Assembly: GCF_000143415.4 (NCBI RefSeq)
Contig: NW_003314266.1
Coordinates: 3,232,398 to 3,296,397 of the forward strand
Direction of reading: 5' to 3'
From: Selaginella moellendorffii
Lineage: Eukaryota > Plantae > Lycopodiophyta
Length of the DNA: 64,000 nt
The notes beneath the pieces are model-generated. The model had not been told where the DNA came from. It searched no databases and saw only the letters and a list, made by a program, of their open reading frames with translations. Made by a program: the position numbers and the translations under genes. Positions 12,117 through 64,000 of the stretch are shown here, one piece after another; positions within the stretch are counted from its first letter, which is position 1, and the number at the start of each line of letters is the position of its first letter.

Positions 12117-12190
12117 TGCCGCTCGCAACACCGCAACTACTCGTAGCGCCGCTCGCAACACCGCAACTGCTCGTAGCGCCGCTCGCACAA
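12117..12190. repeat. 30-bp tandem repeat, ~2.5 copies (GCCGCTCGCAACACCGCAACTRCTCGTAGC)
   Basis: Read directly; mirrored in copy 2 at ~43355-43426. Confidence 0.8.
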
Positions 12191-13046: not shown

Positions 13047-13071
13047 TTTAGGGTTAGGGTTTAGGGTTTAG
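13047..13071 (+). repeat. Short plant telomere-like tract (TTTAGGG-like x3.5) inside the transposon
   Basis: TTTAGGGTTAGGGTTTAGGGTTTAG. Copy 2 equivalents at ~41595-41620 and ~42467-42497. Confidence 0.8.
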
Positions 13072-17500: not shown

Positions 17501-19890
17501 GGATCAGAGGTGTTTGATTCGAAAAGGAAGAAGGGCAACGAAAAGATGATAGGTTATGCCTCGCGGTTATGGCGTGTGTGCTCATGCCATTCATTGCAGA
17601 TCAAGGGCTGAGTGAAAGCAGGGAGTCACCACCTCCTGACTCAGATTCCTATGGCCGACTCCCCTTCCCCAATCTCAATGGAGAGGTATAATGGATGAGG
17701 GATGCTTTTCAAGTCAGGGCCACGTTTTTCTCATCTCGTCGTCTTCGAAGGGTGCGAGAACGTGCAGAAACCATGTTAAGACAGTCGGGTGAGGATACGG
17801 TCCTAGGTCACGCACTAAAACAAGCTATGGATGTCTTGTATTTTGAGATGGAGACTTAGCCAGATGATTTTCCCAAGATGGTCCTGGAAGAACAAGCCAT
17901 CCAGCCTGAGTAGCCTATGGAAGAAATGCAGGAGGGGGATGAGGAGCCAGAGAAAGATAATGAGCAGGAAGAGCAGAAGGACGAAGAGGAGGACAAAGAA
18001 GAGGAGGACGAAGAAGAGGAGGACGAAGAGGACTTGGATGGTCCTCACAATGGTGACGATCACAATAACGACGACGACGATGATGACGACGATGGCCAGC
18101 CTGAGGTGGCCAAAGAGCAGCGGAGGAAGGTCATACAAGACAAACCATCAGGTAAATAATAGTACATCCATTCCTAACGTTTTACCATTTCTAACATTGT
18201 CCATGTAGGTCGCAGAGCAAATGGTAAGTAGAGATTATTCAGTTGAATTTACAAACTCTAGCCTTTAGTGTCGAGGAAGGATAGTGCCAAGCAAGGGTCG
18301 AAACGTATGTCCAATCCTTCAGAATCAGCAGTGCGCCCAAGTGATATCGGTCCTAGTTCCTCAATAGCAGTTGATGGTAAATACAGTATAGTCGATTCAA
18401 TGTGCTAATGAGTTTGTTTTTAGTAGCACGGGAGGATACCATCTCAATCGAAGGGAGATATTTGGACATGCATATGGATCCACCACTGGACTCTACTTGC
18501 CTGCAAGAGTCATCAGAGCTGGTGGAGGCTACTATCCATATCAACGCCAAGCAAGCTGACCACGATCCACTTGATGCTGCCCATACCACTGAGTCGATCT
18601 TGTCCACGTATCCAACTGACGGTGACCAGGCGCCATTGGACCCGCATGAGGCCGCCCCAGCCACCGAGCCGGTCGTATCCTCATTTCCAACGGACTCAAC
18701 GTGTGCCCAATCGTCTGACTACGCGCCGTTGGAACCTCCCTACACCGCCCCTGTTGCCTGTTCGGTCATGTCCACTTTGCCAACGGAGGCACCAGCTGAA
18801 ATGGCGTGTGATCACACGCCATCGGAACCACCCCATGCCACTGTTGAGCCAATTGTACCAGAGTCTACAGCTGAAATGGCATGTGCCCACACGCCATCGG
18901 ATGCAATTGACCCCACATTGCAGAGGAGAGTATTTCCGCCCTTCACGTTTCCTCGACCAAAACCCTCTCAACGACCATCGGGAGCACCATTCGCTAATAT
19001 TGTAGATGGTAAAATTGACTTGTATCATTTTTTATGCTGACGCATTTCATTTCAGAGTCACGGCGAAGGTACTGTATCATTTTTGATCTGAACGGTGTCC
19101 TTTTCTCCCATGAGCGTGGCTCGTCCTCGAATGTCATTGCACCCTCCAAAGCCTGCGGTCGCAAGTTGGTCAAAAGAGACAGATTCACATTAATCACACG
19201 GGAGAAACTGCGGGATCTAATAATGACCATGCGACACTTAAAACAGAGGGCCGGGTTCAATTTGCAATTGGGAGTTTGGACATCCATGATGCGCCACAAT
19301 GTATTAACGTTGCTACAGATGATGCACGATCAGACGCGAGTAATATTACCATTTGACTTTCTCCTAACGCAGGAGGATTGCTTGACTATGGTCCATGTGA
19401 GGGGTAGCAAGCCCATCTTCGTCAAGCCAGAGGCTGTAGTGATGAACCGGACTGCTAGGTCAAGTGAAATCCTCATCATCGATGACTCGCCGATTAAAAC
19501 TGCAGCGAACACGCACACATATGCAGTGCACCCCATCTTTTGCAGTATGGAAACTAGGGAGAAGAAACCGTATGTTCTGGGGGACCTTGCAAAACGGCTT
19601 GGAGCGATGGTGATAGAGAACCGGCCAGTCCAGGAGGTGGAACGGTATATCAGAAGCCATTTGATCGGACAGACACCAGTCATCATTTATGGCATGTATA
19701 TTGTCTAGCCAAGCACTATCCGCATCTCCATAATCTGCTAAACCGGATGGGTTCTTCGACCACTGAACATGAGCGTGGACGTATTAGAGAAGAGATGGCA
19801 TTACTATTGGGTTTAAATCCTGATAGTGTGGAGAGTGATGAAAATCCAAGATTATTGTATAGGCGTTGGAGGCAAAAAATAACAGTCTGA
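14541..19890 (+). pseudogene. Multi-exon cargo gene: ParB/Srx-like + degenerate N4/N6 MTase-like + acidic/Pro-rich + FCP1-like HAD domain; 3' part inactivated in this copy
   Basis: 856-codon ORF followed by frame-preserving GT-AG introns at 15717-15770, 17095-17144, 17232-17287, 17360-17408, 17553-17599, ~18152-18208, ~18224-18268, ~18377-18423 and ~19009-19055. Three premature stops in the 17600-18151 exon and a 28-bp deletion at ~19640 relative to copy 2. Start codon uncertain. Confidence 0.72.
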
Positions 19891-20407
19891 GATGGCATGT
19901 ATTTATTTAAAAATGTAACTTATTATGGCATGGGGTTCCATGCCATTGTATTAATATCAGAAGACAATTCTTTGAGAGGATTTGCATTATACTAGAAGTG
20001 TTACAGCATGTTATTGGAAGTCTACGAAGTTGTTTTATTAATAAGGGGAAAGTAAAGATTGAATGGGGACTTGGGCTCCACCTAGACTTGGAGCAACTGA
20101 GCCAATATTAAAAGGATGGAAAGAAATTGGACGACGATGACAAGGAGAAGAGAGAGGTGAAACAATGGCAGGGGGAGGAGAAGTGATTGAGTAGACATTT
20201 CCTTGTTTAAAATAAAATGGCATGTGCCTCAATGCAGTTGAATTTTGTTATATTTATATACTATATAAAGGTTTGGAAACCTTATTTTACAAGTGGGATA
20301 ATGACAATTCCCACTTTAACGAAATAGAGCTTTTTTTTTATTTAGCTCGTTTTGATTGTTTGATTACCTTTGCCTTTTTTTCCCCCTTTTTCCTTTCTTC
20401 TTGCCAA

Positions 20408-33400: not shown

Positions 33401-34719
33401 GAGTATGAAAACCATAATAAAGAATAATTTTGTAATTCTTGTAATAAATCTTGCAAATTAATAAAGTAATATATTTTTATAAATCAAAGTGTCGTTTCTC
33501 TCGTTCATTAGTACTTGTGTCAGTTTTGGTAGGTTGACTTCAGCACTTCGGTGCATGGGTCCAATTCATAACCATAGGGATAACTATTATAGACTGATCA
33601 CAAATCCCCGCCTCTCTCTCGATGACTCACTATTGCAAAGGGGCATGGTCGTGTAAACAACTTAATTTGCCAATTTATAATAATTGTCTAAATCTTCCCG
33701 ACAGGGTTGATTTCTTGCTCAAGGGAAGTTGGGCCTTTGGCCTTCTCCTTATGTCCCTGCGGGCAAGGATGTATCATTCCTTTGTAAGCCAAGTGGTACT
33801 CGGAGCAACAAGGGTGGCTAACTCCATTAGTCATTTCCTTGTCAGTGACAGCCGGAGGGTGTCTGAGCTTTAACGTCTTTGGATGTAGAGAGGAGAGGTC
33901 ATTCTATAACTCATTTAAGTTGGTGTGTTTCCCACATAGTGTGCTTTTCATTAACTTTCGGAGTTCTTTCCTTGACGGTTTGCTAGACTCAGATATGCAT
34001 CGACGAGGATGTCGATCTTCCTCAAGGGGGGGAAGAGTGTTATGAATGTGACTTCGGGTATCGAAAGTGATTTTGTGTTAGTCTCAGTTCAGTCCCAAAT
34101 AGTATTTATGGAAAGTGTCTAGATTTGATCATTTGGCATATCTATGGAATATAGAGGTCGGCCTGAACACAATGGTGTTCGTCCCGTGTCCAAATTCGCA
34201 ATCTAGGGACATTCCATATTTAGTAAGTTTCGAGCTTGTCCCAGAGACTAACTCCCAGAGTATTAAAGAAGGCTTGGAAGCTCTATTTCGTTAAAGTGGG
34301 AATTGTCATTATCCCACTTGTAAAATAAGGTTTCCAAACCTTTATATAGTATATAAATATAACAAAATTCAACTGCATTGAGGCACATGCCATTTTATTT
34401 TAAACAAGGAAATGTCTACTCAATCACTTCTCCTCCCCCTGCCACTGCTTCACCTCTCTCTTCTCCTTGTCATCGTCGTCCAATTTCTTTCCATCCTTTT
34501 AATATTGGCTCAGTTGCTCCGAGTCTAGGTGGAGCCCAAGTCCCCATTCAATCTTTACTTTCCCATTATTAATAAAACAACTTCGTAGACTTCCAATAAC
34601 ATGCTGTAACACTTCTAGTATAATGCAAATCCTCTCAAAGAATTGTCTTTTAATATTAATACAATAGCATGGAACCCCATGCCATAATAAGTTACATTTT
34701 TAAATAAATACATGCCATC

Positions 34720-37700
34720 TCAGACTGTTATTTTTTGCCTCCAACGCCTATACAATAATCTTGGATTTTCATCACTCTCCACACTATCAGGATTTAAACC
34801 CAATAGTAATGCCATCTCTTCTCTAATACGTCCACGCTCATGTTCAGTGGTCGAAGAACCCATCCGGTTGAGCAGATTATGGAGATGCGGATAGTGCTTG
34901 GCTAGACAATATACATGCCATAAATGATGACTGGTGTCTGTCCGATCAAATGGCTTCTGATATACCGTTCCATCTGCCATTTGGTTGATTTCTGCAGCCA
35001 CCTCCTGGACTGGCCGGTTCTCTATCACCATCGCTCCAAGCCGTTTTGCAAGGTCCCCCAGAACATACGGTTTCTTCTCCCTAGTTTCCATACTGCAAGA
35101 GATGGGGTGCACTACATATGTGTGCGTGTTCGCTGCAGTTTTAATCGGCGAGTCATTGATGATGAGGATTTCACTTGAGCTAGCAGTCCGGTTCATCACT
35201 ACAGCCTCTGGCTTGACGAAGATGGGCTTGCTACCCCTCACATGGACCATAGTCAAGCAATCCTCCTGCGTTAGGAGAAAGTCAAATGGTAATATTACTC
35301 GCGTCTGATCGTGCATCATCTGTAGCAACGTTAATGCATTGTGGCGCATCATGGATGTCCAAACTCCCAATTGCAAATTGAACCCGGCCCTCTGTTTTAA
35401 GTGTCGCATGGTCATTATTAGATCCCGCAGTTTCTCCCGTGTGATTAATGTGAATCTGTCTCTTTTGACCAACTTGCGACCGCAGGCTTTGGAGGGTGCA
35501 ATGACATTCGAGGACGAGCCACGCTCATGGGAGAAAAGGACACCGTTCAGATCAAAAACGATACAGTACCTTCGCCGTGACTCTGAAATGAAATGCGTTA
35601 GCATAAAAAATGGTACAAGTCAATTTTACCATCTACAATATTAGCGAATGTTGCTCCCGATGGTCGTTGAGAGGGTTTTGGTCGAGGAAACGTGAAGGGC
35701 GGAAATACTCTCCTCTGCAATGTGGGGTCAATTGCATCCGATGACGTGTGGGCACATGCCATTTCAGCTGTAGACTCTGGTACAACTGGCTCAACAGTGG
35801 CATGGGGTGGTTCCGATGGCGTGTGATCACACACCATTTCAGCTGGTGCCTCCGTTGGCAAAGTGGACATGACCGAACAGGCAGCAGGGGCGGTGTACGG
35901 AGGTTCCAATGGCGCGTAGTCAGACGATTGGGCACACGTTGAGTCCGTTGGAAATGAGGATACGACCGGCTCGGCGGCTGGGGCGGCCTCATGTGGGTCC
36001 AATGGCGCCTGGTCACCGTCAGTTGGATACGTGGACAAGATTGACTCAGTGGTATGGGCAGCATCAAGTGGAGCGTGGTCAGCTTGCTTGGCGTTGATAT
36101 GGATAGTAGCCTCCACCAGCTCTGATGACTCTTGCAGCCAAGTCGAGTCCACTGGCGGATCCATATGCATGTCCAAATATCTCCCTTCGATTGAGATGGT
36201 ATCCTCCCGTGCTACTAAAAACAAACTCATTAGCACATTGAATCGACTATACTGTATTTACCATCAACTGCTATTGAGGAACTAGGACCGATATCACTTG
36301 AGCGCACTGCTGATTCTGAAGGATTGGACATACGTTTCGACCCTTGCTTGGCACTATCCTTCCTCGACACTAAAGGCTAGAGTTTGTAAATTCAACTGAA
36401 TAATCTCTACTTACCATTTGCTCTGCGACCTACATGGACAATGTTAGAAATGGTAAAAGGTTAGGAATGGATGTACTATTATTTACCTGATGGTTTGTCT
36501 TGTATGACCTTCCTCCGCCGCTCTTTGGCCACCTCAGGCTGGCCATCGTCGTCATCATCGTCGTCGTCGTTATTGTGATCGTCACCATTGTGAGGACCAT
36601 CCAAGTCCTCTTCGTCCTCCTCTTCTTTGTCCTCCTCTTCTTTGTCCTCCTCTTCGTCCTTCTGCTCTTCTTGCTCATTATCTTTCTCTGGCTCCTCATC
36701 CCCCTCCTGCATTTCTTCCATAGGCTGCTCAGGCTGGATGGCTTGTTCTTCCAGGACCATCTTGGGAAAATCATCTGGCCGAGTCTCCATCTCAAAATAC
36801 AAGACATCCATAGCTTGTTTTAGTGCGTGACCTAGGACCGTATCCTCACCCGACTGTCTTAACATGGTTTCTGCACGTTCTTGCACCCTTCGAAGACGAC
36901 GAGATGAGAAAAACGTGGCCCTGACTTGAAAAGCTTCCCTCATCCATTGTACCTCTCCATTGAGATTGGGGAAGGGGAGTCCACCATAGGAATCTGAGTC
37001 ATGAGGTGGTGACTGCCTGCTTTCACTCAGCCCTTGATCTGCAATGAATGGCATGAGCACACACGCCATAACCGCGAGGCATTACCTATCATCTTTTCGT
37101 TGCCCTTCTTCCTTTTCAAATCAAACGCCTCTGATCTCGATGACTGTCCAACGTGCTTTCGCTTTTTATGACCACTGTCAGTTTGAGCTTGGCTGGTGCT
37201 TGCCTGTTTTGCCTTTGAAGAAGTTTCTCCTGCAAGGAATGGCATGAGACCACACGCCATTGCAAATATAATTTGTACCTCCTTTTTTTCTATTGCTTGT
37301 CTGTTTGTCCTTCTTCGATGCGCCACCAGTGCGCTTTTCAGTCCTCGTGTCTGAATATTCACAACGATCTATAATCAAAATGGCGTGAGGCCTCACGTGA
37401 CCTTACCTTGTGCAGGTTGTGAGCTCGGCCCAACATGGGTATCTTCAACAGTAGCTGTTAATGCCGTTTCAGCATCTGGGGGTGGCCACGCTCCTGCATA
37501 CAGAGCTTGTGAGATAACATTTAAACTTAAAGTGTGTACTCACCAGGTTCGCAGAGAAGATACTGTTTTTCTTTGGCAACTGTAATTATATGCTCCATTG
37601 AAGTCACCTCTTCAATGGAGTTTGTCACCGCAACACACGGGACACCCTTGAGTAGTGCGGCTCGAAAGAATAGTCCGCCGCAGTTGTACTCAACAACGCA

Positions 37701-40075
37701 TTTGCCCTTGGAGTCGGAAGCAGGTGACCCACCCGCTATTGCGTTGAAGACCCAGCTGAGCATTTCCCATGCTGCACCTGGAGCTTTCTTTGGATTCGAA
37801 AGCTCCATAGCCGTCTTCAGTTCCTCAGGCACGGGTAAATTGACCTCCCTCAGATCAATTCGATTGGCCTTGTCAAACGAAGCTGGGAAGTCACTCCAGT
37901 CCCACTCTGCTGCAGGACCAATAACAAGGGCGAGTGTGAAGATGCGGACATTCGTCGGTATCTTCTTCTTAGCCATTATCCCATGGATCTCCCGCATCTC
38001 CTTGCCTTTCAACCGAGCCTTCACCTCGTTCAAGGCCTTCCAGAACTTGTGATAGGATTCGGAGTCGTAGATCATATAGTGGACTGAAGATTCCACCTCC
38101 GCAAGTCCCACCATTAAGTCAATGATGGAGCTGACTTCGTCTGCATGAGTGATCTCCTCGTTTGTGAAGTCCATCACACAAAAGATGTTCTTGACCTGCT
38201 CATCTCCGCGGGAAACGATGCTCCTCCACCTTTGATCCTCATCCGAATTCAAGTATACCCGGTAAGGTTCTCGATAGGCCTCTGCTGCGGGGTCGAGCTG
38301 TTTCTGAAGCCGGCGGTCGACATCAATCTTAATGAAATTTGGATACTGATCCAACTTCTCAGCTTTACTTTTCGTGGCATCCCGCAGCAGATCGATGAAC
38401 TTGGGGGCCCCCTTCACGTACTCGTCGATGTCTTCATTTGACAACTCCAGCGCTTCCATCATCTCTTGCGTGGTGTCGATGCTCACCCTCTCCACGGCCA
38501 CTTGCTCGAAGATCCAATCCTTCAATAGCGCACGAGCTCTCAGAGTCGTGCACAAGTCCTCGTATGTCACAATATGGCCGGGAGTCATTTTGGTCTTGTT
38601 GAAGACAACCTCACAACGTAGAAGAGCATTAGCCACTGTCAGAAGGTCGTCGTCGTCTAGAGACCGCGAGAAACGCAAGGCGTTGAGCTTCAAATCATTG
38701 GGCTTCCGGCCGTCCTCCACACCCATTGAGTTTGGCAACTCCCCGTCATGGTACCTCCTCAGCACATCTACCCATTTGTCAAAAACAACTTTTGTCGCGA
38801 GTAGAATGTTATGGATGCTGAGTGTGTCATTGACCCCCAATGTTTTCGAGAGAAGACTCGAGAATTCCTGCAATGGAAATGGCGTGAGGCCACATGCTAT
38901 GCCACATACAACGAGGCTTACCTGCCAGGCGCTAGTTGCTAGTGCACGTCTTTGTCCTGGTTTTTGTGGCTTCTTCAGTTGAACCCAGAGCTTCCGTGTT
39001 CGTGCCAATGTCTCGTGCAGACCCGATTTGTAGCACGTTTCTTGCTTGACATTCTGCGCGTGGGAGATGTATATGATAGATCGGAGGGGCGAGTTGCCTT
39101 TTATCAGGCGGACAACTCTTGTCTTGAAGACTTTCTTCACCTCCTCGCCCACCATAATATCCACAACTATCTCCTGCATCGCCAAGCTAGAATGCTGCCC
39201 GGAGATGGCATAGAACCGGATGTTCTGATCGTCCAACACCTTCCTATTGATCAAGTCTGGAAACCTCATCTCGCGCTTCATTTTTTGGTAGTAGGGGATC
39301 ACGTTTGCGATGTCGGGTGTTACTGGTGTTACTATTCCAACAAAGTATATACAATCGACGTGAGCCGTATCGACATCCAAAGCAAATACAACCACAGGCT
39401 AGTATCTGATGAGTGGGTGGAGAAATTGAAGCAGAAGATGCTGGCAAGTAGTACTATTATCTGCGACGATTTTTGCTGCCTCTTCTTGCTCTTTCTGCTC
39501 TTTGCGGCTCTTCTTTTTGGTGGGTGTAGTGTTCGAACCCGAGGCAATGGCATCACTGAGTAGCTTCTTTTTTGGAGCAGGAGAGTCGGACGTCGGCTTG
39601 AGCTTGACCACCCTTTTCTGCTTCGAGGTAGTTTCCAGATCGACCCCCTTCCCCTTTGCTTCGCGAACTGGAGTCACTCTCAACGGCTCAATGTTGGAAT
39701 ATAGTTTTTGAACATCGCCGTAGGTGAGGTCCGTGGATTCCATGTGATCTTCATAGACCCGCAGCGTCTTTGAAATTGTGGGCCTCCTGGACAACCTCTC
39801 CCTAGCTCCCTCTAGGAATTCCTCATAGCCGCTGCCCCCCTCCGGGAAGCCGCTAGGATGTGCAAGGTGGATCTTGAAGGCAGACGCTGTCTCTACCACA
39901 AGTGCCAGTCCATATTCTTGCATGGAACTGCATGGAGTGTCTGTCACTTAGATGAGGATCCCCATGCATTCTTTTCTCCCACCATCTGTGTTGTACAGCC
40001 TCAGATCCTCGCCTTCCATCCCGAAAGTCCAACTGGTGAGCTCCTCCCCCTTCTCTGCATCCACATTGACAGTGG
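34720..40075 (-). pseudogene. Cargo gene, copy 2: 3' exons open, 5' exon broken by a 123-bp inversion
   Basis: ORFs 39399-39947, 37527-39395, 36479-37069, 35598-36236 and 34720-35604 are near-identical to the copy-1 exons. Confidence 0.72.
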
Positions 40076-41125
40076 CTGGAAGAAGAATGCAATTCCTCGC
40101 CTATTCAGAAATGCACAACAATTAGAGCTGACAGATGAAAAGCTAGTAGCTGGAAATAACGTGAGGCCACACGCCATTCACCACTGCATCAGATGTCTTG
40201 AGGCTGCATCCTAAGATGGCGTGAGGCTACACGCCATCTGTAACCGGACTGCACTCGAGAGCCCAATCGGTGCATGCCAATGTTGCTACTGAATGGCATG
40301 TGGCCTCATGCCATTTTCTACTTGGCCTAAAAGACTTACCATTTGAAGCCGAATGGAGGTGTGACAACCGGACTCGCTGGCGAATGTGCACTGTGTGTGC
40401 AACGGATCGTAGCAGCAAGGCTACTCTGCCACTTACAGTTGGAGAGTGGCGCTGAAATCTCCCGGGACGCCAAGTGGGCTGCGTGTGGGTGGCGGAGTGG
40501 GCGGCGGAGTTGGCGGCGAAGTTACAAACTGGGTGTGTCTTGAAGTGGACGCCGATGCACACGAGCGCAATGCGAGCGCGAGTGTGATGCAAGCGCGAGT
40601 GGATGCCAATGCACACGAGAAACCTGTAGAGAAGTGGGAGCGCGAGTGGGAGCGCGATGCGAGCGTGAGTGGGAGCGCGATGCGAGCGCGAGTACGAAGC
40701 AAAATGCAAAACCTAACCTCACACGCGCGAAATGTCACGACGGTTGGTAATCCCGCCACGTCATCATTTCTCGGACTTGGGCGCCACCATTAATTTCTGG
40801 ATCGGCGCGCGCATGCGTGAAATCCAAAAGAAATCCGCAACGTCATCATTCCTCGGACTGCATGCACGCGAAATCCAAAAGAAAGATCATGATTGGGATA
40901 TCATTTAATACCCTCGCTATATTTATACCATGCATGATTGGATATTCCAAAGCATCTTGTATTTCCAAAAATGCCAGATGTTCAGCTAAATAAATTGTCA
41001 GAGGATTTGATGTGATGTTCAAGCATGTGGGCTCATGCAATTTTGATCCCAAAAAATGCACCAAAAAATGCTCGGCGTCATCTGGCGTTATCTCTTGAAT
41101 GGCGTGGGGCCGCATGCCATTTTCA

Positions 41126-42983
41126 GGAGCACATAGGAGTATATTCCTAGAATATTCTGACACGCGCGAGATTGTTTTGAGTTTCCTGGAGATCCAACCA
41201 TTAGATCGCAACTAGATTTTACAGAATGGTATACAATGTCCTTCTTGATGACCCTGCAAAGAAGCATCTTGATCGGACACCACATGAGACCACACGAGCC
41301 TTACAATGTTTCAGGGGCATTTGCTATAGATCCGACCGTTATTTTGCTCCAAGATTCTACAGTTTGGTGTGCATTGACCTTTCCATCGACACTGCAAAGG
41401 GACATCACAATCAGATGCGGGATCACAAAAAACCAACTTCACTAACTCTGGTTTCACCAAGATCTACGTAAGGAGTTATGAAATGAAAGGACCCTCTCTA
41501 TTGAAATGTGTTTATGGTCCTAGGGGCATTGTGACATATCCAAGGATTTTGCATCAAGTTCTGTATTTGCATGTTTATCAAGCTACTGAATTGCTAAACC
41601 CTAAACCCTAAACCCTAAACATGTGGCAAATGCTGCGTGAAGAAAGATGCCCTTTCTGGGCAAATGCTGTAAGAGGCAGATGCCGAGCAGATGTATCTCA
41701 GGCTAGTGAAGGGGACAAACGAAAGCTAGCAACCAAAGGAATGTAAGCAACCAAAGGAATGTAAGTAGGGCATGTGTTTCTAAGTTTAAAAATGCCTCAA
41801 CCACTTAAATTCCCAAGTAAATAAAGCTGTTTCTATTTTTGGTACAGGTAAACTTTATAGCGTGTGGGCTCATGCAATTTTGAACCCAAAAATGCACCAA
41901 AAAATGCTCGACTAGCATTATTCTTTGAATGGCGTGTGGCCTTATATTGCCATAAATGACACAGCATAATTATTCCTTTACACGGCGAATAATCTTGGAG
42001 CACATAGGAGTATATTCCTAGAATATTCTAACACGCGCGAGATTGTTTTGAGTTTCCTGGAGATCCAACCGTTAGATCGCAACTAGATTTTACAGAATGG
42101 TATACAATGTCCTTCTTGATGACCCTGCAAAGAAGCATCTCGATCGGACACCACATGAGACCACACGAGCCTTACAATTTTTCAGGGGCATTTGCCATAG
42201 ATCCGACCGTTATTTTGCTCCAAGATTCTACAGTTTGGTGTGCATTGACCTTTCCATCGACACTGCAAAGGGACATCACAATCAGATGTGGGATCACAAA
42301 AAACCAACTTCACTAACTCTGGTTTCACCAAGATCTACGTAAGGAGTTATAAAATGAAAGGACCCTCTCTATTGAAATGTGTTTATGGTCCTAGGGGCAT
42401 TGTGACATATCAAAGGATTTTGCATCAAGTTCTGTATTTGCATGTTTATCAAGCTACTGAATTGCAAAACCCTAAACCCTAAACCCTAACCCTAAACATG
42501 TGGCAAATGCTGCGTGAAGAAAGATGCCCTTTCTGGGCAAATGCTGTAAGAGGCAGATGCCGAGCAGATGTATCTCAGGCTAGCGAAGGGGACAAACGAA
42601 ATCTAGCTATAAACATGACGGGATGCAAATAGATTACTAGGCTGGTCCTGTGAAAATCAAAAACCATAATTGAAAACATTGAAAATGCAAAAAGAAAGGT
42701 TTATAATATTTTTGAATTTTAAGCAACCAAAGGAATGTAAGTAGGGCATGTGTTTGTAAGTTTAAAAATGCCTCAACCACTTAAATTCCCAAGTAAATAA
42801 AGCTGTTTCTATTTTTGGTATAGGTAAACTTTATAGCGTGTGGGCTCATGCAATTTTGAACCCAAAAATGCACCAAAAAATGCTCAACTAGCATTATTCT
42901 TTGAATGGCGTGTGGCCTTATATTGCCATAAATGGACGTACACACACAGCATAATTATTCTTTTACACGGCGAATAATCATGG
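41126..42983. repeat. Tandem duplication (~0.87 kb + ~0.98 kb) of the intergenic spacer in copy 2
   Basis: GGAGCACATAGGAGTATATTCC starts at both 41126 and 41997; single copy in element 1. Confidence 0.88.
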
Positions 42984-43520
42984 CGCGGATCGCTGACACG
43001 GCATGGCAAAGTTCGAATCACTGACATGGCACAGCTGGATTGAGGCAAGGACATGATGTGACAAAGTTCAACCTCCGACAGCAAAGTCTAGAAGCTACTC
43101 AGTTTGAAATTTGTCAGAGGAATCATAAGATCTGGTTTGTCAGAGGATTTGATGTGACGTTCAAGCGTGTGTTATTTTTGAATTCTCGAACTCATTCCTA
43201 GGTCTATCATTTTTGTGCGCCGTGTTCTTGGTTCCGCTGAGCGCAGTGAGCGCTGCTTGTGTAAGCGGCGTTGTGAGCTGTGGTTTATGCGTCTACAAGC
43301 GGTTGCGGCATTGCGAGCGCCATTGCGAGCGGTAGTTTATGCGAGTGGCAGTTTGTGCGAGCGGCGCTACGAGCAGTTGCGGTGTTGCGAGCGGCGCTAC
43401 GAGTAGTTGCGGTGTTGCGAGCGGCACTGTCTTTGGTGTGGCTACTGCTTCCTCTTGATATTCGGCACTTGTGCTTCCTGGTATGTTCACCATGGAATGG
43501 TTTAGGACCACATTTAGAAA

Positions 43521-44152
43521 TGATACAGCAGCATTGCCTTCCCCAAGCCTTTGACAGTGTATAACAAAGTTCCGATCCATAGACACAAGGGTCCCTTTTG
43601 CAACTCTCTTCCCACCATTCAAAATGTAAACCTTTTCCCCAACCCTGAAGGCCATTCTGAAAGTGCAACAAAGAAGTTAAGACCATACAAAAAATGATTG
43701 GAGAATGGCCTAAATCATAACATACCAAACAACCTCAATAGCATGAGGCCACATGCCATTATTCAAACATGCTATTGACACCCACATGTAAGTTCGCATT
43801 CACAAAATTGGCATGAGCCCTCATGCCATTAGTGGTACCACTAATGGCATGAGGGCTCATGCCAATTTTGTGAATGCGAAATTTCATGTGGGTGTCAATA
43901 GCATGTTTGAATAATGGCATGTGGCCTCATGCTATTGAGGTTGTTTGGTATGTTATGATTTAGGCCATTCTCCAATCATTTTTTGTATGGTCTTAACTTC
44001 TTTTCTGCACTTTCAGAATGGCCTTCAGGGTTGGGGAAAAGGTTTACATTTTGAATGGTGGGAAGAGAGTTGCAAAAGGGACCCTTGTGTCTATGGATCG
44101 GAACTTTGTTATACACTGTCAAAGGCTTGGGGAAGGCAATGCTGCTGTATCA
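43521..44152. repeat. Spacer-less inverted duplication with 316-bp arms, centred on GGTACC at 43834-43839
   Basis: The left arm is the reverse complement of the right arm with only a handful of mismatches. It duplicates the transposase 5' UTR and first 45 codons (ORF 43293-43655 starts MAFRVGEK). Confidence 0.93.
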
Positions 44153-47086
44153 GTAGAGACTGTCTTCGATGGGAATGTGGTCGCTATTGAACGAGGAGAG
44201 ATGGTCGTCGGGGTAAATGTTGTTGTTGCCTTGAAAAATCTGCAGAAGAAAGCAGATGTTGGGGACAGCGCAAGTGCGACGCATGTTCCCTCCATGGATC
44301 TTAAGAACCGTGCTACATGGATTCAGGCAAAGGTGTTTCTAAACAACCCCGAGGGGGAGGTGGTAGCTGAGGGCTTAGCCACAGTTGTCGATCCAAGAGA
44401 TGCGGTTGCTAATCAAGAATTGGGTTGGGATGATATTGGAGTTGCAATTTTAGAGGTTGTTGACACAGAAGAAAACAGTCTGACTATTGGAAGCATTGTG
44501 CGGTGGAAATTGAGGCATTTAGTGTTTGAGAATGTGAAGGATTCACAATCAAACACCACTACAACTGATGACAGAACATCTCTTCATGGGAAAAGAAAGT
44601 ACACCTTCCTACAGCGCAGCCAAAGGGATCTGAGCAACGAACCGAAAAGGCAGAAAATGGCGATGGAGGTTCGAATGGTCTCGACAGTTGCTTGTTGCAA
44701 GAGGAGGTGCTGTCAACATGCTGATTGGGATGCTATTGAAGAGGAGAGAGCAAGATACAAGACATTTTCCTGGAAGGCAGCTCGCAATTTTGTGTATGAG
44801 GCATTACGGTCATCTGTTGATGCTTCAGAACATCAGGTGGGGGGCATGGTCTTCCAGAGGGGTTTGGTCTGCATGAAGGCATGGAGAATCATTTATGGAG
44901 TCCCTCAAACCACATTCTACAGAATCAAAACTGAGTTCGAGGAACAAAGGGTTCAACAGGCAGTCCATGGGAACGACGGTACGCACAAAACCAGGGGTCA
45001 TGTTGTATATGGAGAGGCAATCTTCAAGAGGTTTGTCGAGACATGTAGCGAGCAACAACCACATAAAACTCGCCTCTTGGAAGATGGAACACGAGACACC
45101 CAACGAGTTCTCCCTTCCATGTATACCAAGGGGGCCATATTGGAAGATGTGAATCGGGAACTCCAGAGTAATGGCTACAGGAAGCTGAGCCAATCTAGAT
45201 TTAGTAGATTGTGGAGCAACAGGTTCAGGGATGTGAGTATAGGAAAGTACTCTAGCTTTTCAAAGTGTGACGAGTGCACTGCTATCAAAATGGCTTTGTC
45301 GAAGAATTCTTGCAGCGCTCAAGAGCGAGAGACGTTGGTTAGAAGGCGGCTCGACCACAACATCGAGCAGAGAAGCTGCAGGACTGCATATTATCATAAC
45401 AGGATTCTCTCCATGGAGAGACCTGACTCTTACCTCTGCATCATCCACGACAAAATGGATCAGAAAAAGACGTGCTTACCTCGACTCAATCCTGCCCCCA
45501 AGGCAATCTCTTCATCCATGCAGCTGCCTGTGTCTCTGTTTGGCATAATCGCTCATGGGCATGGTGCCCAGAACTATGGGAACTTCTTTGTACCTCTATG
45601 GGGTGGCGGGGGTGCAAACATTATGATTGCGTCCCTAGCAAAACACTTAAGGTCTCTGCAAAGTGCGCAGACTGAGCTGAACGGCCAACCCTTGCATAAG
45701 GCCCTTGTCGATCGAACCCCATACAGGGTTCAGCTGGAGGAGGAGCAAAGGCTTGCAGTATCGCGTGGGGCCCCATGCCATCCCAGTGAATATATTGGCC
45801 GTCAGATTGTAGGGTTATCACGTGAGGCCTCATGCCATTCCGACGAGGCTGGTCGCCCGGTGAATGCACAGCCTCATCCAAACGAAGCAGAATCTCAAGG
45901 AAGTTCTTGCGGCCGATGTGGCCTTCCACCCCATCTTCTGCTCCAAACAGACAATGCTGGCAGTGAGAACAAAAACATGTACGTCTTCGCGTACTTGGCG
46001 ATGCTTGTTGCCAAAGGCATATTTGAAACGGTTACACTTGGCTTTCTCATGGTTGGGCACACTCATGAAGACGTCGATGCCATGTTCAGTCACTTGGCAG
46101 AGTCCCTCCGGCGATCCAATGTCCTCACCCTCCCACAACTCTACGATGAATTCCAAAATTGCATCAAAGGCACTGTTGAAGCTGCACTTCTGACAGAGGT
46201 TCCAGACTTTAAGGGGTTTGTAAGAGGCTACATCAGGGACGGATCCGAAACGCTGATTGGCCACTCCAAGCCTCTTCAGTTTCATTTCAGCATGTGTGAC
46301 GGTGCTCCAGTGATGAGGTACAAGATGAGAGAATGGGACACAGTGTGGCTGCCAGTGGACGGCATTGAACTCTTCAAGAGAGATCCCATAACTGGGGAAC
46401 CTATGATTCCTTAGGGTTCCCCACGGCCGATGCACCCGGATGGACTCAAAGACCAGGAAAGTATAGTGGCCGGGATTAGACAGCATATTGCCTTCTGGAA
46501 GAGGGGGTTGGTGTTTGGTGGAGAATCCTATTTTAAGAGGTGCAAGCCTTTGCTCGAATACTAGGAGAAGATTATATCTGCTATCCAAAATGGGCCGGTT
46601 GTATATGAAGAATTGGAAGAGTCCTTTTGGCCAGAACCCAGAGCACCAGATAGTAGCGGAACAATGTCCTCTGGAAATGCAGTGACAGATAACGATGTTG
46701 AGGATCACTATTGTGGGCCGAGGAACAAGAAGCCGGATTCAGCATTCAATCCAGTACAGGTCTGCAAAGGAATGGTCGTGCTTGTCAGACCCAGTAATAA
46801 AAAACAAATGATATGGGTGGGGCGCTGCATCACTGATGCAGAGGAGGACGCGGAAACTAACTCCTTCAATGTAACTGTGGAGTGGTTCAAGCCAAGTTCC
46901 GGATATATGAAGGATTGCCTAGAAAAGAGATGGGTGCTGAATCCAAGGGATCCCAGCATGAGCATATCGGTGGATAATGTTGTGCATGGTTGGATGCGGA
47001 AGCAGAGTGCCACCATCACCTTGCCAGACCATGCAAGAGATGCAGCAAGAGCATTCATAACCCGGGTTCAAGGTGAGATTCATTAA
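44018..47086 (+). pseudogene. Transposase, copy 2, with two premature TAG codons (46412-46414, 46562-46564)
   Basis: Near-identical to 8695-11760; the changes are CAG>TAG and TGG>TAG. Confidence 0.88.
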
Positions 47087-49107
47087 TATTCCTTTACTAA
47101 GTTTCTAATGTATTTTATTTCAAGGTGAACAATCCGAATCTGAATCAGAGGAGGCGTGATGGCATGTGGCCCTTTGCACTAGTATATCTTAATACCGGTC
47201 TGAGAAATAGAATGGCATGTGCCCTCAGGCCTTTTACTAAATCACCTTTGAAAGAAATGCAAGCCTCTATGTCGTAAAAAAAAGGTACTAGAGAAATTCC
47301 TTAATAATATGAATGTTATTTAGTTTCATGAAAATACACTAAGGGTCAAATGAGTTAAATGACTTCTCCAGACTAGCAATGCCTCTTGCTACACCTTCAC
47401 AATTAGATTCGTTAGAAAAAGATAACATTGAATAATATCTAAATGTTCTCACCATTAAGTTATATGTCTGGCTAATAGGAATGACGTTCATCTTGGAAAG
47501 CTCACCACACGCTCAATGAACAAACAAATAGTGTGTGCGCGCATGCCATCGCTCTTCTTTAGCTTCAGATTCAGCTTGTTCACCTTGACAATGAGATTTA
47601 TTATACAACCAGATGGACTCAGTCTGGACACAAAGTCACCACGCTAGTCACCATGCCCCAGATATGTCTAGCCCCTGGACAAAAAACATATAATTTCACG
47701 TCATTTTCAAATACTTGAAAATTTGTACCTAGTCCCATTTTACTGAATAAATCCCACTTTAACGAAATAGAGCTTTTGGGGTGAAAGCCCAAAGCATGTG
47801 TTCCTCAAGGGGGGACAGGGGGGGGGGGGGGGTTTAGGGGGTTTCAAATGTATAATAGGGATAATGGTTAGAATGTATGTCCGACCACCTGAGACATTAG
47901 TTTGGCTCCCGTTGGGTTGTATTGCTCTTTGTTTTGCATCCGGCTTGGGTCTAAGCCCAAGCTCCATGTTCCTCTAGTTGGTGGGGTACCCTCCTCCTCG
48001 TGTTAGGCCACCGGTATGCCAAAATTGTGCTAGACTCCGTCTGACACCATTTTGCATGTATGTGCTAGATACGGGAAGCTGGTGCTCGTAGAATTGTATC
48101 TGACCCTTATTTCGTAGTGCAACAGGCTTGGAGTTTGGCTCCAAATTCAAGTGTGCTACACCCAAGGCTAGAAAGCTTCTAAAGAAAGCTGGGTTAATGG
48201 TTTTGCCACCTTTGGTTGGTAGATAGTCTACAAGCTTCTAGCCTTGTCCATCTGTTGTTTCAAAGTGTTGTGGACCATGGTGGAGGGTTGGAGAATGTGA
48301 AGAGAAAAAGTTGTGGCTAAAAATAATCTCTAAGTTGCTGCAAATGTGTTCTCATCATTGCTCAGAAGGTTACACTATAAAGTACTTATTCTTTGGAGAC
48401 TTTTCTGTAAAAGCATACTTAATACAACATTAGAAATTCTCTAGTGGATATGAATTCCAAGGGAGGAAGAGTTCTATGGCTGAAAACTCCCTTGGTAACA
48501 TAAATGCGAGTAACACTAGTTCAATCTCGAGTGAAATGGCTTCATTTGGTGGCCAAGGTTGCATCTCTACTTCATCTAGATGGGCCTTGTGCTCCACAAG
48601 CCCAAGAGCCATTACTTTTTCCTGAAAACTCATGCAAATATTTCTCCTATCGATAGAGTTGTGTGGAATCTCTGAGCCAGAAAGAACTGGATTTGGCACC
48701 TCTAGCTATGTGAGGAACTGTTGTAGATTGTCCTCTTGTGTCCTTGCATGAGGATTTGTCTCAAAAAAGTCACTCTTCAAAGCCACCACAAAAACCATAT
48801 GCTCCTCAAAGTCAAGCATTTGTGGAATCTCAAAAATCTCACCTAGATCTTTTGCCCCTTGGAGCCCAAGTGAATGTGGTGATGTAGAGTGGATGGAGGA
48901 TAAGTTGAGGGGCAAAGTTGTCTAATCTATGTGGAAAAAGTTGACCATGTTACATTGCAAAGATTGAGACTTTGTCATCAAGATGGCAATTGATGAAGAA
49001 GCAATAGATCATTGTGAAGAGGAGCTTAGTGGTGCTGTTGCAACCTTAGCCATTTCTTAGGATGCCAAAGCCTACCTCTTAGCATTGAGAACCATCACTT
49101 AGCTGTT

Positions 49108-57332: not shown

Positions 57333-59160
57333 TGTAAGCGACTAAATTTTCCATTCTACTTTAGTCACTTAACCACACCTCTGACCACTTGGAGGAGTCT
57401 CATTCACAACCTCCATAAGTCCAATCCAGGACTTGGGACTTGCTAGCCCCGAGAATGGCATCCATGCCACTCAACATTTGCACTTGGTCCAAGTGCTCCA
57501 CGTGTCCGATCCCATGACCGACACTCAAAGGTACCACCGACATAGCAGCCCGTTACGCTAAGGCCATGCCCATTCACCTTTGCCGCACTAGTGGTCCAAT
57601 ACCACTTGCATCACAATCCCGTCTCTCCAAGACTGGGCCATCTATCCACGAGTGGTCATCCTAGATCCACTCCTTAGCATCCTTAGGATGCCCACAGACC
57701 TGGGGAATTGCCTTCCCCGAAGTCCCTTTGTCAGTTCCTACTAAGTCCCTTTTCTGCCCCTGGCCGTGTTTGCCAACACTGCCACTGGATCGAGGCCCGT
57801 AGGCCCGACCACTAAGTCCCATGGTCCTCTGGGACTTCCTCACCACACGACTGTGTCCTTGGTCGCTACCCCAGAGGACTACTCCTCTTCCTTTCCACAG
57901 TCTAGGCCTTTGGGACAACATTTCGGAACACTGTGGCCTTACGCGAGCCACCTGGGTACTCTCCTCGCCTTCTGCCCTTGGGTGCTCTAGCCATGGGCTT
58001 AGAGCGGGTTCCGTTGAGCCACACCAGGTATCCAAGTAGGTAGTGCCACCCCCACTTGGACTGGGAGCATCGGCCAGTCAATCTCCCGGGGGAACTAGAG
58101 CCGGCTCTTGAACACTTCACCAAGCTACCCCGCTTGTCGGTCTGTGTTCACTCTAGTCTTGGACTTCCCAGGGGGCAGCTCATCACCAACCACTGGGTCT
58201 GGCTTTCCTGGGCCAAACTGGCTCCACTGCAGTCCTCCCCCTACTATACTTTTGGAGCTCTCCAAACCCCCCAGGGTCTGGGAGACGAACGCTTTGGGCT
58301 TTCACCCTCTCAGGCTCCGGACTCAGACTCGGACTCGGACTCGGACTCGGACTCGGACTCGGACTCGGACTCGGACTCGGACTTGGATTCAGACTCGGAC
58401 TCGGGCTCGGGCTCGGTCTCGGCCTCGGCCTCGGTCTCGGTCCCGATCTCGGTCTCGGTCTCGGTCTCGGTCCCGGTCTCGGTCCCGGTCTTGGTCTCGA
58501 CTTCTGACTCCATCTCGGACTCCATCTCGGACTCCATCTCGGACTCCATCTCGGACTCCATCTCGGACTCCATCTCGGGTCCATCTCGGGTCCATCTTTG
58601 GACTCCATCTCGGACTCCATCTCGGGTCCATCTCGGACTCCATCTCGGACTCCATTTCGGGTCCATCTCGGGTCCACCTCGGACTCCATCTCGGACTCCA
58701 CCTCGGACTCCATCTCGGGTCCATCTCGGACTCCACTTCGGACTCCAACTCAGGTCCATCTCGGGTCCACCTCAGACTCCATCTCGGACTCCATCTCGGA
58801 CTCCATCTCGGGTCCATCTCGGACTCCACTTCGGACTCCAACTAGGGTCCATCTCAGACTCCATCTCAGACTCCAACTTGGGTCCATCTCGGACTCCACT
58901 TCGGACTCCAACTCGAGTCTATCTCGGACACTCCCACGTGTCATGTGTTGGTCCTTTTGGGTCCCTTTTTGGAGCCTCGCCTTTTGCTCGCTTCGTGCTC
59001 GTTCCTCGAGCACTTCGTTGGGAGTTCCACTCCCAGTCTTGACTTTTCAAGTCGGAGCTTTTGGTCCAAACGTGTTACGCTCGTTTGGCTCTCGCTTCGG
59101 CCACTACCATGTGGCGCCCTTCCGGCTCCACTTTGGGGCCTAGGGATTTTGTGTCTCACA
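57333..59160 (-). mobile_element. 1.83-kb LTR of family F with an internal satellite
   Basis: TG..CA ends. Minus-strand PBS TGGTATCGGAGC at ~57318-57329 and PPT-like GGGTGGTGGAG at 59162-59172. Second copy starts at 62112. Confidence 0.8.
58316..58930. repeat. Compound satellite: (GACTCG)n, (GTCTCG)n, then (GACTCCATCTCG/GGTCCATCTCG)n
   Basis: Read directly; shorter version at 63115-63535. Confidence 0.93.
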
Positions 59161-62111
59161 ACTCCACCACCCATAGACGAAGTTCGATGTCCTCATCGAA
59201 CGGTAAACCCTTTCATAAAGTAACACCCACACGTGTTACCATTTCCATCCTTGGCACCTAGCCAATCTTTGTCTATGGTTTGACATCAAAGGCTCACCAT
59301 GCCTTGTCCATCCTTTAAGGAGCGTAGTCTCTCCAACTTAGAGATTGATTGGACCACATGTAATGGTTCTCTCCTTTTATTGGTTTAGTTCTCGCTAAAC
59401 CTTTTAGAGACCCTTCTCTAAGTCAATCCCACTACTCCTTCTCGAGTAGTCTCAATTTCCATCGATATAACCTTTGCACTTTGGAACTTTGAATTTTGAC
59501 TTCTTGGAGTCAATTTCCTAGGTGTCTCCGACACCTTGCCTTGCACCTTTTGTGCAACTCCACTTCCCATCCTAGGAAGTTCTCTACTCGAGGGCACCAT
59601 CATCCTCTCTTCTATTTCGTGCCAAAGTTCCAGTTATCATACTTTGTGCTAGGGCTGTTCATGGCCCTATCATTTGGCTACCTTACCGCTCCCTCCTTTG
59701 GAGCTTCCACTTTCGCCAAATCGGAGCATTTCGGAATCCCTCCTTGGAAACACACTTCCTTTCCCGCAACTTGTTAGCGTCCAACACATTAGTGTTCCTC
59801 GCCTAACTTTGTCACTTGGATTCCTTCCAAGGGATTCCACGGCCCTATCTTGGCCACTCATCTTTTGCTCCTATCCGTTGATTGTTGCACCAAGCAACAT
59901 CGAATCTCTACCTCCCTCCTTGAGGTATTGTTTCGGTTCCATAGCAAAGACTCTTCTTTGCCAAGTCCGGAGGATGTTCACCCCTAGTACGTCTCTTTAG
60001 CATCTTCTGCTATGGGCTCTATCCACGGCCCAACTTCGTGACCCTCCCATGGGTCTTTTATAGAGACTACTTTCCTCGGACTCACTATGCCATCGCACGG
60101 ACATAGTTTATTTCCCTTAGGTGCTCTTCCCACTTGGTTATCACGACCAAGCCACACCACCTTAAACAGTTCAATTCTAACATTTTGAACCAGGAACTTC
60201 ATTCCTTAGCCAACCAAGGACCTTGTCCTTATCTGGCCATAAGATCACCTAGTGATCTCACCTTGGCACCTTAACAGAGTTGCCAAGAGGTACTTGGTTT
60301 TCTAGACCTCCAAGTTGTTGACTATAACCCCGGGGGCATCCCCCACACTTGGCGGTGCACCCAAGCTAGCCCTTACGGCCAAGGGTTCATAGCAACTGAG
60401 ATTAGGTGTCCCCATCTCACTCACCACGACCTTGGTGCCACTTGCACCAAAGTGTTCAAGTTAGATATGCTGAGCTTTCACACTAAGCAATCTAACCGTG
60501 CATCACGACTCCGAGGCATCCCTCGCTTGGCGGTGTGCCCAAACCAGTCTTCCCACTGAGAGTCCATGACCACCGAAATATGAGTGTCCTCATATTCCAA
60601 ACCATCACCACACCCTAGTGATTTGGGACTCGAACCCAAGCACTAGAGGGTCGGGACTCGAACCCAACCTCCGTATATGCATCTACGGACGGCATCACAC
60701 AAGATGCCTGGCATGACTCCCCACGCCGGTGCACCAACTTATTTTTAAAGCGCGCTACAGATCACAACTTAGGAACCTAGTTCCTCCACACTGCCAAGTC
60801 CTCTCACTTGACATGTCTGTGATCATGCATGGACTCCTCCATACTCGGCCCCATGGCCCACCCCTTTTGAAGTTATCACCTTCAACTAGGGTATTTGTTC
60901 CCCCGACGTGCCAGTCTCGCTTGGCAAGTCCTCCGACCACTGTAACATGGTTCCTGCATAAGCGTGAAAGTCCTTGACCATCGACTTTCGTTCAAAGCCC
61001 TCTCTTTGAACACTCGGGAACTACTTCCCTAACCTTGATAGCCTTGCCTCATGGCAAGCTTCAAGACCACGCTTTTGCTGCGCCACTCTGATTTCGCGCG
61101 TTCCATGAACCATTTACACTTGGCCTTTCTAGGTACTAAGCTACCTAGAATCGTCTTTGGGAACCTTGAAGGAACTCTGTCCCTCAGCTTGTTAAGGCCT
61201 CCCTTTTTGCAAGCCCTCAAAATACCACATAGTCTAACATGGACAATTCCATATTTTAGACTCTCCATGGCATCACTGTTGCTAGCGGCAACACCCTCGA
61301 GCCCCCACTTGATTCTCCACTCCCAGCTGGCATAACCAACCTTGGTTATGCCCTTTGATTCCTATGGTTCAGTTCTATCCCCTTACTTCTTGCTTTTTGG
61401 CTTCACACCTTTCCTTTGGTCATTCTCCTCCAGACCAGGAGGATAGCTTTGCACTTTTCTATCACGCTTTAGCAAGTATTCTTAGGGATGAACCTACCCA
61501 ATAGCCTAGGGAGTGGTTCCTCAATCCGGATATGCTCACCTTATAATCCCACACACTGGGATTACATTGTTGCTTATGGGCCTTTACATGCCCATCACTA
61601 GCCTCGCCAAAATTCCATTTTTGGCTTTGTCCAACTCGGGTAGACAGTCCTCTCCTGTCTCCGCAACCTTGGACATTTGGATAGCACCTTCTACGCTAGG
61701 GACTTAGTCCCTTGGGCTTTATCCATTGCCCTTGCGACATCAAACACCACCTTCTGGTGTTCTAGAGTGTCCGGGTGTCCCAATGATGGCTTTCTTGACA
61801 ATGAGTATTTCCTTTTATGACATTGACTTACTATATCGCAACACAAGCAACTTATCCCCCGTAAGGGTATATCCGACTTCCTTATGCTATTAAGAAGTTT
61901 TGGGTAGCTACCTTCTACCCGTTAAACCGGTTATTTTCCACCTCTTGCTTAGTTGCCTCATAGTTGTCAAGTCCTACAACTCATTGCTTGGTGCTTTCAC
62001 ACCTCCATCATTATCTGGGTCACCACACTCCAACTGCATGCTCTGCAGCTTAGGCTATGCCATTCCCATTTCCATTGGGATTCCTTTGGCAAGGGGTTCT
62101 CATGAACCCAC
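59161..62111 (-). mobile_element. Degenerate internal region of the family-F element
   Basis: Lies beyond the PPT; 59363-59815 is repeated at 63535-64000; no intact ORF. Confidence 0.65.
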
Positions 62112-63239
62112 TGTAAGCGACTAATTTTTCCATTCTACTTTAGTCACTTAACCACACCTCCGACCACTTGGAGGAGTCTCATTCACAACCTCCATAAGTC
62201 CCATTCAGGACTTGGGGCTTGCTAGCCCCGAGAATGGCATCCATGCCACTCAACCTTTGCACTTGGTCCAAGTGCTCCACGTGTCCGATCCCATGACCGA
62301 CACCCAAAGGTACCATTGACATCTCGGCCCGTTACGCTAAGGCCATGCCCATTCACCTTTGCTGCGCAAATGGTCCAATACCACTTGCATCACCATCCCG
62401 TCTCTCCAAGACTGGGCCATCTGTCTACGAGGGGTCATCCTAGATCCACTCCTTAGCATCCTTAGGATGCCCACAGACCTGGGGAATCACCTTCCCCGAA
62501 GTCCCTTTGTCAGTTCCTACCAAGTCCCTTTCTGCCCCTGGCCGTGTTTGCCAACACTGCCACTGGATCGAGGCCCACAGGCCCGACCACTAAGTCCCAC
62601 GGTCCTCTAGGACTTCCTCACCACACGTCTATGTCCTTGGTCACTACCCCAGAGGACTGCTCCTCTTCCTTTCCACAGTCTGGGCCTTTGGGACGACATT
62701 TCGGAACACCGTGGCCTTACGCGAGCCACCTGGGTACTCTCCCCACCTATCACCTTTAGGTGCTCTAGCCATGGGCTTAGAGCAAGGTTCCGTTGAGCCA
62801 CGCCTGGTATCCAAGTAGGTAGTGCCACCCACACTTGGACTGGGAGCATCGGCCAGTCGATCTCCCGGGGGAACTAGAGCCGGTTCTTGAACACTTCACC
62901 AAGCTACCCCGCTTGTCGGTCTGTGTTCACTCTAGTCTTGGACTTCCCAGTGGGCAGCTCATCACCCAACACTGGGTCTGGCCTTCCTGGGCCAAACTGG
63001 CCTTTCCTGGCCAAACTGGCTCCACTGCAGTCCTCCCCCTTACTATACTTTTGGAGCTCACCAAACCCCCCAGGGTCTGGGAGACGAACGCTTTGGGCTT
63101 TCACCCTCTCAGGCTCCGGACTCGGACTCGGATTCGGACTCGGACTCGGACTCGGACTCGGACTCGGACTCGGATTCAGACTCGGACTCGGGCTCGGGCT
63201 TGGTCTCGGCCTCGGCCTCGGTCTCGGTCTCGGTCCTGA

Positions 63240-63271
<32 letters not shown>

Positions 63272-64000
63272 CCGGTCTCGGTCTCGACTTCGGACTCCAT
63301 CTCGGACTCCATCTTGGACTCCATCTCGGGTCCATCTCGGGTCCATCTCGAACTCCATCTCGGACTCCATCTTGGGTCCATCTCAGACTCCATCTCGGAC
63401 TCCATTTCGGGTCCATCTCGGGTCCACCTCGGACTCCATCTCGGACTCCATCTCGGACTCCATCTCGGGTCCATCTCGGACTCCACTTCGGACTCCAACT
63501 CGGGTCCATCTCGGGTCCACCTCGGACTCCACTCCATGGTTCTCTCCTTTTATTGGTTTAGTTCTCGCTAAACCTCTTAGAGACCCTTCTCTAAGTCAAT
63601 CCCACTACTCCTTCTCGAGTAGTCTCAATTTCCATCGATATAACCTTTGCACTTTGGAACTTTGAATTTTGACTTCTTGGAGTCAATTTCCTAGGTGTCT
63701 CCAACACCTTGCATTGCACAAATTGTGTGACTCCACTTCCCTATCCTAGGAAGTTCATTACTTGAGGGCACCATCATCCTCTCTTCTATTTCGTGCCACC
63801 TTGGGCACTAAGTTCCATTTATCACACTTTGTGCTAGGGTTGTCCATCGCCCTATCATTTGGCTACCTTACCGCTCCCTCCCTTGGAGCTTCCACTTTCG
63901 CCAAATCGGAGCAATTCGGAATCCCTCCTTGGAAACACACTTCCTTTCCCGCAACTTATTAGCGTCCAACACATTAGTGTTCCTCGCCTAACTTTGTCAC
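62112..64000 (-). mobile_element. Second family-F copy: LTR 62112-~63535, fused by deletion to internal sequence
   Basis: Colinear with 57333-~58750, then jumps to sequence matching 59363+. Confidence 0.78.

Follow-up and report, generated by a model that had tools for sequence, protein, structure and literature searches.

Two copies of a putative Sola-like DNA transposon are found in the window (the whole stretch of Selaginella moellendorffii DNA analysed here, 64 kb in length), and the palindrome that is the subject of this work is located inside the second of them. The main features of both copies are the following, with the strand given where one was assigned:

7897-20332: copy 1, 12,436 bp, with target site duplication (TSD) TTTT
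34278-47775, + strand: copy 2, 13,498 bp, with TSD TTGG, in the opposite orientation to copy 1
8695-11760, - strand: transposase open reading frame (ORF) of copy 1, intact, 1021 aa, a potential target
44018-47086, + strand: transposase frame (DUF7869) of copy 2, with two nonsense codons
39327-39449, no strand: in-place inversion of 123 bp in copy 2, inside the second (ParB-like) gene, equivalent to 15189-15311 in copy 1
11926-12020, - strand: segment of 95 bp in copy 1, missing from copy 2

Both copies have terminal inverted repeats (TIRs) of 24 bp, starting AAGCTCTATTTCG, and the layout of each comprises a transposase gene (Pfam DUF7869) and a divergently oriented second gene. We describe the host element as a putative Sola-like TIR DNA transposon on the basis of the TIR, the 4-bp TSD and DUF7869, this domain being the only Pfam match of the transposase, whose homologues are unnamed. 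A two-gene layout with a ParB-like/methyltransferase protein has been described for Sola1 of Ectocarpus (PMC12477816), and a literature search for DUF7869 found no mention of it. Since their 4-bp TSDs differ (TTTT versus TTGG), copies 1 and 2 are independent insertions. They are ca. 98% identical, with 1.8% of the aligned sites being different (228 differences, 82% of them transitions). Both are also rich in a 22-bp palindromic motif (core GGCATG-N6-CATGCC), which has 23 matches in the 64-kb window versus 0.2 expected, nearly all of them inside the two copies.

Some other repeats are present in the window. Copies 1 and 2, separated by 13.9 kb and inverted with respect to each other, constitute a 12-kb inverted repeat with 98% identity that could cause rearrangement or, on read-through, long dsRNA. 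Copy 2 has an extra tandem duplication of ca. 870-980 bp in the intergenic repeat region at 41126-42934 (units 41126-41425/41997-42296 and 41744-41958/42720-42934), to which it mostly owes its greater length compared to copy 1. A separate repeat family is represented by tandem arrays of 12/23/35-bp repeats (58225-58967 and 63012-63624), which are common to two segments, 57333-59815 and 62112-64000, ca. 4.7 kb apart.

An intact copy and a dead one

In copy 1 not only the transposase but also the second gene has an intact ORF (14541-17111, 856 aa). The transposase frame of copy 2 is interrupted by two nonsense codons, CAG>TAG at 46412-46414 and TGG>TAG at 46562-46564, and the codon differences between the copies, 35 nonsynonymous versus 16 synonymous, suggest that this gene is in roughly neutral decay. 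The 123-bp inversion has 7-bp inverted repeats at its borders (TGTTACT/AGTAACA and AATAGTA/TACTATT) and gives the second gene of copy 2 a stop where copy 1 reads through; it is a second derived lesion of this copy, template-switch-like in its appearance. The two transposase nonsense codons and the inversion in the second gene indicate that copy 2 is dead, and the palindrome therefore resides in a dead element that shares the window with a possibly functional one.

Structure of the palindrome

The sequence-only reading of this locus had described a near-perfect palindrome of 632 bp without spacer, lying as an inverted duplication over the 5' end of the transposase gene. Our analysis confirmed both points. 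The inverted repeat 43521-43836/43837-44152 consists of two 316-nt arms, 99% complementary and separated by 0 nt, and the 64-kb window has no second close-range inverted repeat of more than 30 nt. The four mismatches between the arms are at right-arm positions 43881, 43884, 44004, and 44005, corresponding to left-arm positions 43792, 43789, 43669, and 43668, respectively. The parts of the structure are:

43521-43836, - strand: left arm, a derived inverted copy, antisense of 135 bp of coding sequence (CDS) and 181 bp upstream, with all four mismatches
43837-44152, + strand: right arm, original and collinear with the remainder of copy 2, with the transposase start codon at 44018
43830-43843, no strand: centre, 14 bp (TAGTGGT/ACCACTA), without counterpart in copy 1
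43520-43522, + strand: outer-left junction, ATG, the first 3 nt of a 22-bp motif kept whole in copy 1 (12002-12023)
43808-43829 and 43844-43865, no strand: mirrored pair of 22-bp motifs
43738-43759 and 43914-43935: second mirrored pair of 22-bp motifs

The duplicated tract, as seen in the right arm, includes 181 bp of upstream sequence, the start codon and the first 45 codons (135 bp of CDS). This start codon is considered genuine because the transposase N-terminus (MxFxxGxxV...GEGN) is conserved in homologues that are 35-38% identical, and also in P0014, a 764-aa protein of another family copy. Upstream of the ATG there is a candidate 69-nt GT..AG intron (43948-44016), and the sequence suggests a second donor-like site at 43481. 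A transposase fragment with 97% identity from one more family copy (P0001, a Logan contig) has lost codons 4-84 in frame directly after MAF, so that this copy, too, has a transposase gene rearranged at its 5' end.

Comparison with copy 1 allows the rearrangement to be followed in some detail. In the orientation of copy 2, the order in copy 1 is region A, a first motif (M3, 12002-12023), 68 nt of unique sequence, a second motif (M2, 11904-11925), region B (11626-11925) and the rest of the gene, whereas copy 2 has region A, the ATG of M3, inverted B (the left arm), the 14-bp centre, B (the right arm) and the rest of the gene. The net exchange is of 95 bp of copy 1 (11926-12020) versus 307 bp of inverted B plus the 14-bp centre, so that the earlier statement that ca. 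100 bp of copy 1 had been replaced is borne out, with 95 unrelated bp occupying this place in copy 1. The centre contains a KpnI site (GGTACC, 43834-43839).

It had also been claimed that copies of the 22-bp motif abut both the centre and the outer junction. This was only partly right. Around the centre, mirrored copies are found 7 bp off on each side; the outer boundaries give a different picture. At the left one only the 3 nt ATG of the motif are kept, and TG (43521-43522) belongs to both of the joined sequences, i.e., a microhomology of 2 bp, while the right one (44152/44153) has no motif and is the mere end of the duplicated tract. In copy 1, M2, M3 and their flanks form a 28-nt stem (11902-11929/11998-12025) around a 68-nt loop; folded as single-stranded DNA, this stem-loop has -36.4 kcal/mol (z -5.6). 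The upstream breakpoint falls after the third nt of M3, where this stem has its foot. With three motif copies within ca. 400 bp, such proximity of breakpoint and motif would arise by chance with a probability of ca. 0.2 (a rough estimate), making the association suggestive but not statistically compelling locally.

Polarity, donor, and age

Part of the CDS is present in inverted form in the left arm, which is consequently the derived one. The same feature rules out that the palindrome was ancestral and copy 1 a deletion derivative, a possibility also opposed by the 95 bp of copy 1, the non-motif part of which has no similarity to the arms. As for the donor, copy 2 is distinguished from copy 1 in this segment by four substitutions and a 9-bp indel, all of which are present in both arms. 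These copy-2-specific variants indicate that copy 2 itself or its sister chromatid was the donor, and they rule out copy 1 as the source even though its orientation is that of the left arm.

Wherever the arms differ (4/4 sites), copy 1 has the base of the right arm, and therefore all four changes arose in the left arm. They form two tight pairs (P ca. 0.001 for four random sites) and three of the four are transversions, versus 18% transversions between the copies. Given this clustering and spectrum, ordinary drift is an unlikely source for them; the pattern is in keeping with low-fidelity synthesis when the palindrome was formed, or else with miscalled bases in a hairpin that is hard to sequence. 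Had the palindrome been as old as the split between the copies, its 316-bp arms should have accumulated ca. 5.7 differences, versus a single transition seen, and for this reason it is probably younger than the copy 1/copy 2 split, unless the arms have been homogenised.

Origin of the palindrome

The reading that we prefer, with a probability of about 0.65, is that the palindrome is real and derived, a fold-back duplication within a dead Sola-like transposon copy, and represents a scar of DNA repair or replication with latent hairpin-RNA potential. Polymerase theta is capable of snap-back synthesis, and a plausible course of events would begin with the 28-nt stem-loop of the two motifs stalling a replication fork or being cut. 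On the gene side, the 3' end left by resection would then snap back around GTAC and undergo low-fidelity extension for ca. 316 nt (alternatively, the nascent strand would switch templates), after which the new 3' end (...CA) would pair with the upstream end (...TG) and be ligated by polymerase-theta-type end joining. These steps would explain at once why there is zero spacer and a self-complementary centre, why 2 bp of microhomology and a local deletion are found, and why the errors are confined to the new arm. Priming of the snap-back from a 1-2-bp stem around GTAC is the weak part of this proposal, and the origin may alternatively lie in two replicative switches or involve the sister chromatid. 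Fold-back inversions via single-stranded DNA hairpins and microhomology have been documented in yeast and human (PMC7467729, PMC3907307), and the fragility of palindromic sites is known (PMC7999016).

If the reads bear it out, this would be a clean natural case of a small fold-back duplication without spacer, in which junctions, donor and error pattern are all readable because a reference copy with 98% identity is available in the window. It would also be useful for the study of template-switch/Pol-theta-type repair in an early vascular plant, and it is relevant to the question of whether the palindromes scattered through these Sola-like elements are fragile.

Silencing potential

Any RNA crossing the palindrome, on either strand, would be expected to fold into a near-perfect 316-bp hairpin, a suitable substrate for Dicer-like enzymes. 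When positions 43421-44252 are folded as RNA the predicted energy is -657 kcal/mol, versus -238 +/- 7 for shuffled sequences (z -59), and the predicted structure closes on a 4-nt GUAC loop (GTAC in the DNA). A near-identical potential target exists as well, namely copy 1, with its intact 1021-aa ORF, TIRs and TSD, to which the arms are 99% identical. This opens the question of a trans-acting silencer similar to Mu killer (Muk) of maize, in which RNA from the upstream promoter of the transposase, or from read-through, would cross the palindrome and give siRNAs repressing the intact copies, either post-transcriptionally or by methylation, on family members such as copy 1. The sequence-only reading had put this forward; we regard it as unlikely.

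Several observations are in line with such a role. Arms of 316 bp fall within the lengths that work in engineered hairpin constructs, and the hairpin predicted here has arms of that length closed by a 4-nt loop. In the coding part of the arms, 94 of the 115 21-mers match intact copy 1 perfectly. Precedents exist in maize, both in Mu killer (PMC3440606) and in composite insertions of Ac (bioRxiv 10.1101/2020.01.07.897926). The critical issue is where transcription would start, since a hairpin RNA requires a start outside the palindrome; a start within the 181 bp of the right arm would lead to two divergent sense RNAs of identical sequence instead of dsRNA. Copy 1 has a TATA-like CCTTATATT (12081-12089) on the transposase strand, ca. 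325 bp upstream of the start codon, that could be a promoter, and the matching site in copy 2 would put the start ca. 30 bp before the left arm. However, in copy 2 this site is altered to CTTGATATT (43454-43462). The host copy, moreover, shows neutral decay only.

The small-RNA machinery of the host also has to be considered. Lycophytes have DCL1, DCL3, and DCL4 and no DCL2, and S. moellendorffii is reported to have neither a 24-nt siRNA peak nor CHH methylation (PMC5569507). Heritable transcriptional silencing of the Mu killer type is less assured for this reason, while 21-nt post-transcriptional silencing by the predicted hairpin is possible. The reading as Mu killer is a structural analogy only, and the simplest one is that the palindrome represents one more disabling mutation in the decaying copy 2. 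As a potential source of hairpin RNA, it provides a concrete locus at which public small-RNA and methylation data could show how silencing initially recognises DNA transposons in lineages other than seed plants.

Artefact and other explanations

The palindrome could also be an artefact of assembly or cloning, a chimeric fold-back clone or read having entered the consensus while the genome is copy-1-like at this place. We find this quite unlikely, even though fold-back chimeras are a known class of artefact. The hallmarks of an assembly fold-back (identical arms, an adjacent gap or contig end, a broken continuation) are absent from the consensus sequence: the structure, a short one, is embedded in unique sequence that continues correctly and collinearly on both sides, the arms have four differences, and the 64-kb window contains neither N nor gap. 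A specific loss of 95 bp together with a 2-bp microhomology junction also argues against it, and the copy-2-specific variants in the left arm show that it was not built from misplaced copy-1 reads. The doubt that persists comes from the difficulty of sequencing long palindromes and from the four clustered mismatches, which could be low-quality calls. Instability and difficulties in cloning or sequencing are to be expected of a near-perfect palindrome of 632 bp, and cloning in Escherichia coli tends to delete palindromes, not to create them. Exact look-ups of the window ORFs and of a chimeric ORF spanning the junction found no match in protein collections, which is uninformative rather than negative.

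The same structure may be imagined with a different origin, which we consider very unlikely, where a break near the motif is replicated or hairpin-capped, the sister ends fuse head to head via microhomology at GGTACC/GTAC, and a second break 316 bp away is rejoined upstream. Palindromes with zero spacer are a hallmark of this type of events (PMC3834830, PMC7999016), and the palindromic GGTACC at the centre could serve as cohesive microhomology. The cost is a dicentric/acentric intermediate plus two more precise events to obtain a balanced 316-bp insertion, whereas one tract of repair synthesis accounts more simply for the same structure.

Equally improbable is that a hairpin "killer" allele has been generated by the Sola-like element itself, the 22-bp palindromes acting as fragile or template-switch points that gave rise to the inverted duplication, and 21-nt siRNAs from its hairpin RNA silencing the family without canonical 24-nt RdDM. 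If true, self-silencing would be built into the architecture of the transposon.

The last possibility involves a feature that spans the outer-left junction:

43655 to 43293, - strand: chimeric ORF, 120 aa, made of 45 aa of transposase N-terminus and 75 novel aa, antisense of the upstream region

A divergent promoter in the duplicated 181 bp could produce a leftward transcript, with this chimera working as a small repressor like KP of the P element, and indeed the mirrored ORF is present, opened by the mirrored start codon of the left arm, and its 45 N-terminal residues are the conserved protein start; yet it is hardly credible, as just these 45 transposase residues are kept, the 120-aa product is unmatched in protein collections by exact look-up and homology search (uninformative rather than negative), and there is no sign of conservation or expression.

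Comparison with known systems

As a fold-back duplication, the palindrome of copy 2 resembles the inverted duplications found in gross chromosomal rearrangements of yeast, in human inverted duplications and in ODIRA: in all of them the inverted copy adjoins its template, the junction has microhomology, sequence has been lost at the break and short inverted repeats lie nearby (PMC7467729, PMC3907307, PMC4689423). Fold-back inversions in yeast and human are usually terminal or large and have a spacer between the arms, whereas here we have a local insertion of 316 bp with zero spacer and both flanks restored.

Inverted repeats of transposon fragments with the potential to give dsRNA are also known from the Ac/Ds composite insertions of maize (p1-ww-id alleles). 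The Ac composite insertions can be transcribed from the element's own promoter and generate dsRNA and siRNAs (bioRxiv 10.1101/2020.01.07.897926). Inverted duplications of Ac/Ds arise by alternative transposition at the element termini and re-replication; in contrast, both junctions of the copy 2 palindrome are internal, far from the TIRs, and have microhomology of the repair type.

The likeness to Mu killer of maize lies in the natural inverted duplication of the 5' part of a transposase in a defective derivative, both loci being in principle able to give a fold-back RNA homologous to an autonomous element. In Muk ca. 1.3 kb of mudrA plus TIRA are duplicated and the rest of the element is absent; its transcription proceeds through or from a gene at its flank, and genetic work has proven it to be a dominant silencer (PMC3440606). 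The palindrome of copy 2 differs in having internal arms of 316 bp, no TIR and the rest of the element present but dead, in being known from sequence alone, and in its host, S. moellendorffii, which reportedly has no 24-nt siRNA peak. Sharing with Muk only the first defining feature and a near-identical potential target, it is not classed as a Mu-killer-type silencer.

Finally, the long near-perfect stem and minimal loop are those of the type of Dicer-like substrate seen at natural and engineered hp-siRNA loci of plants (PMC10827316). Membership in this group is defined by the production of small RNAs, and the copy 2 palindrome, characterised here at the level of its DNA, resembles in its structure a candidate hairpin-RNA locus.
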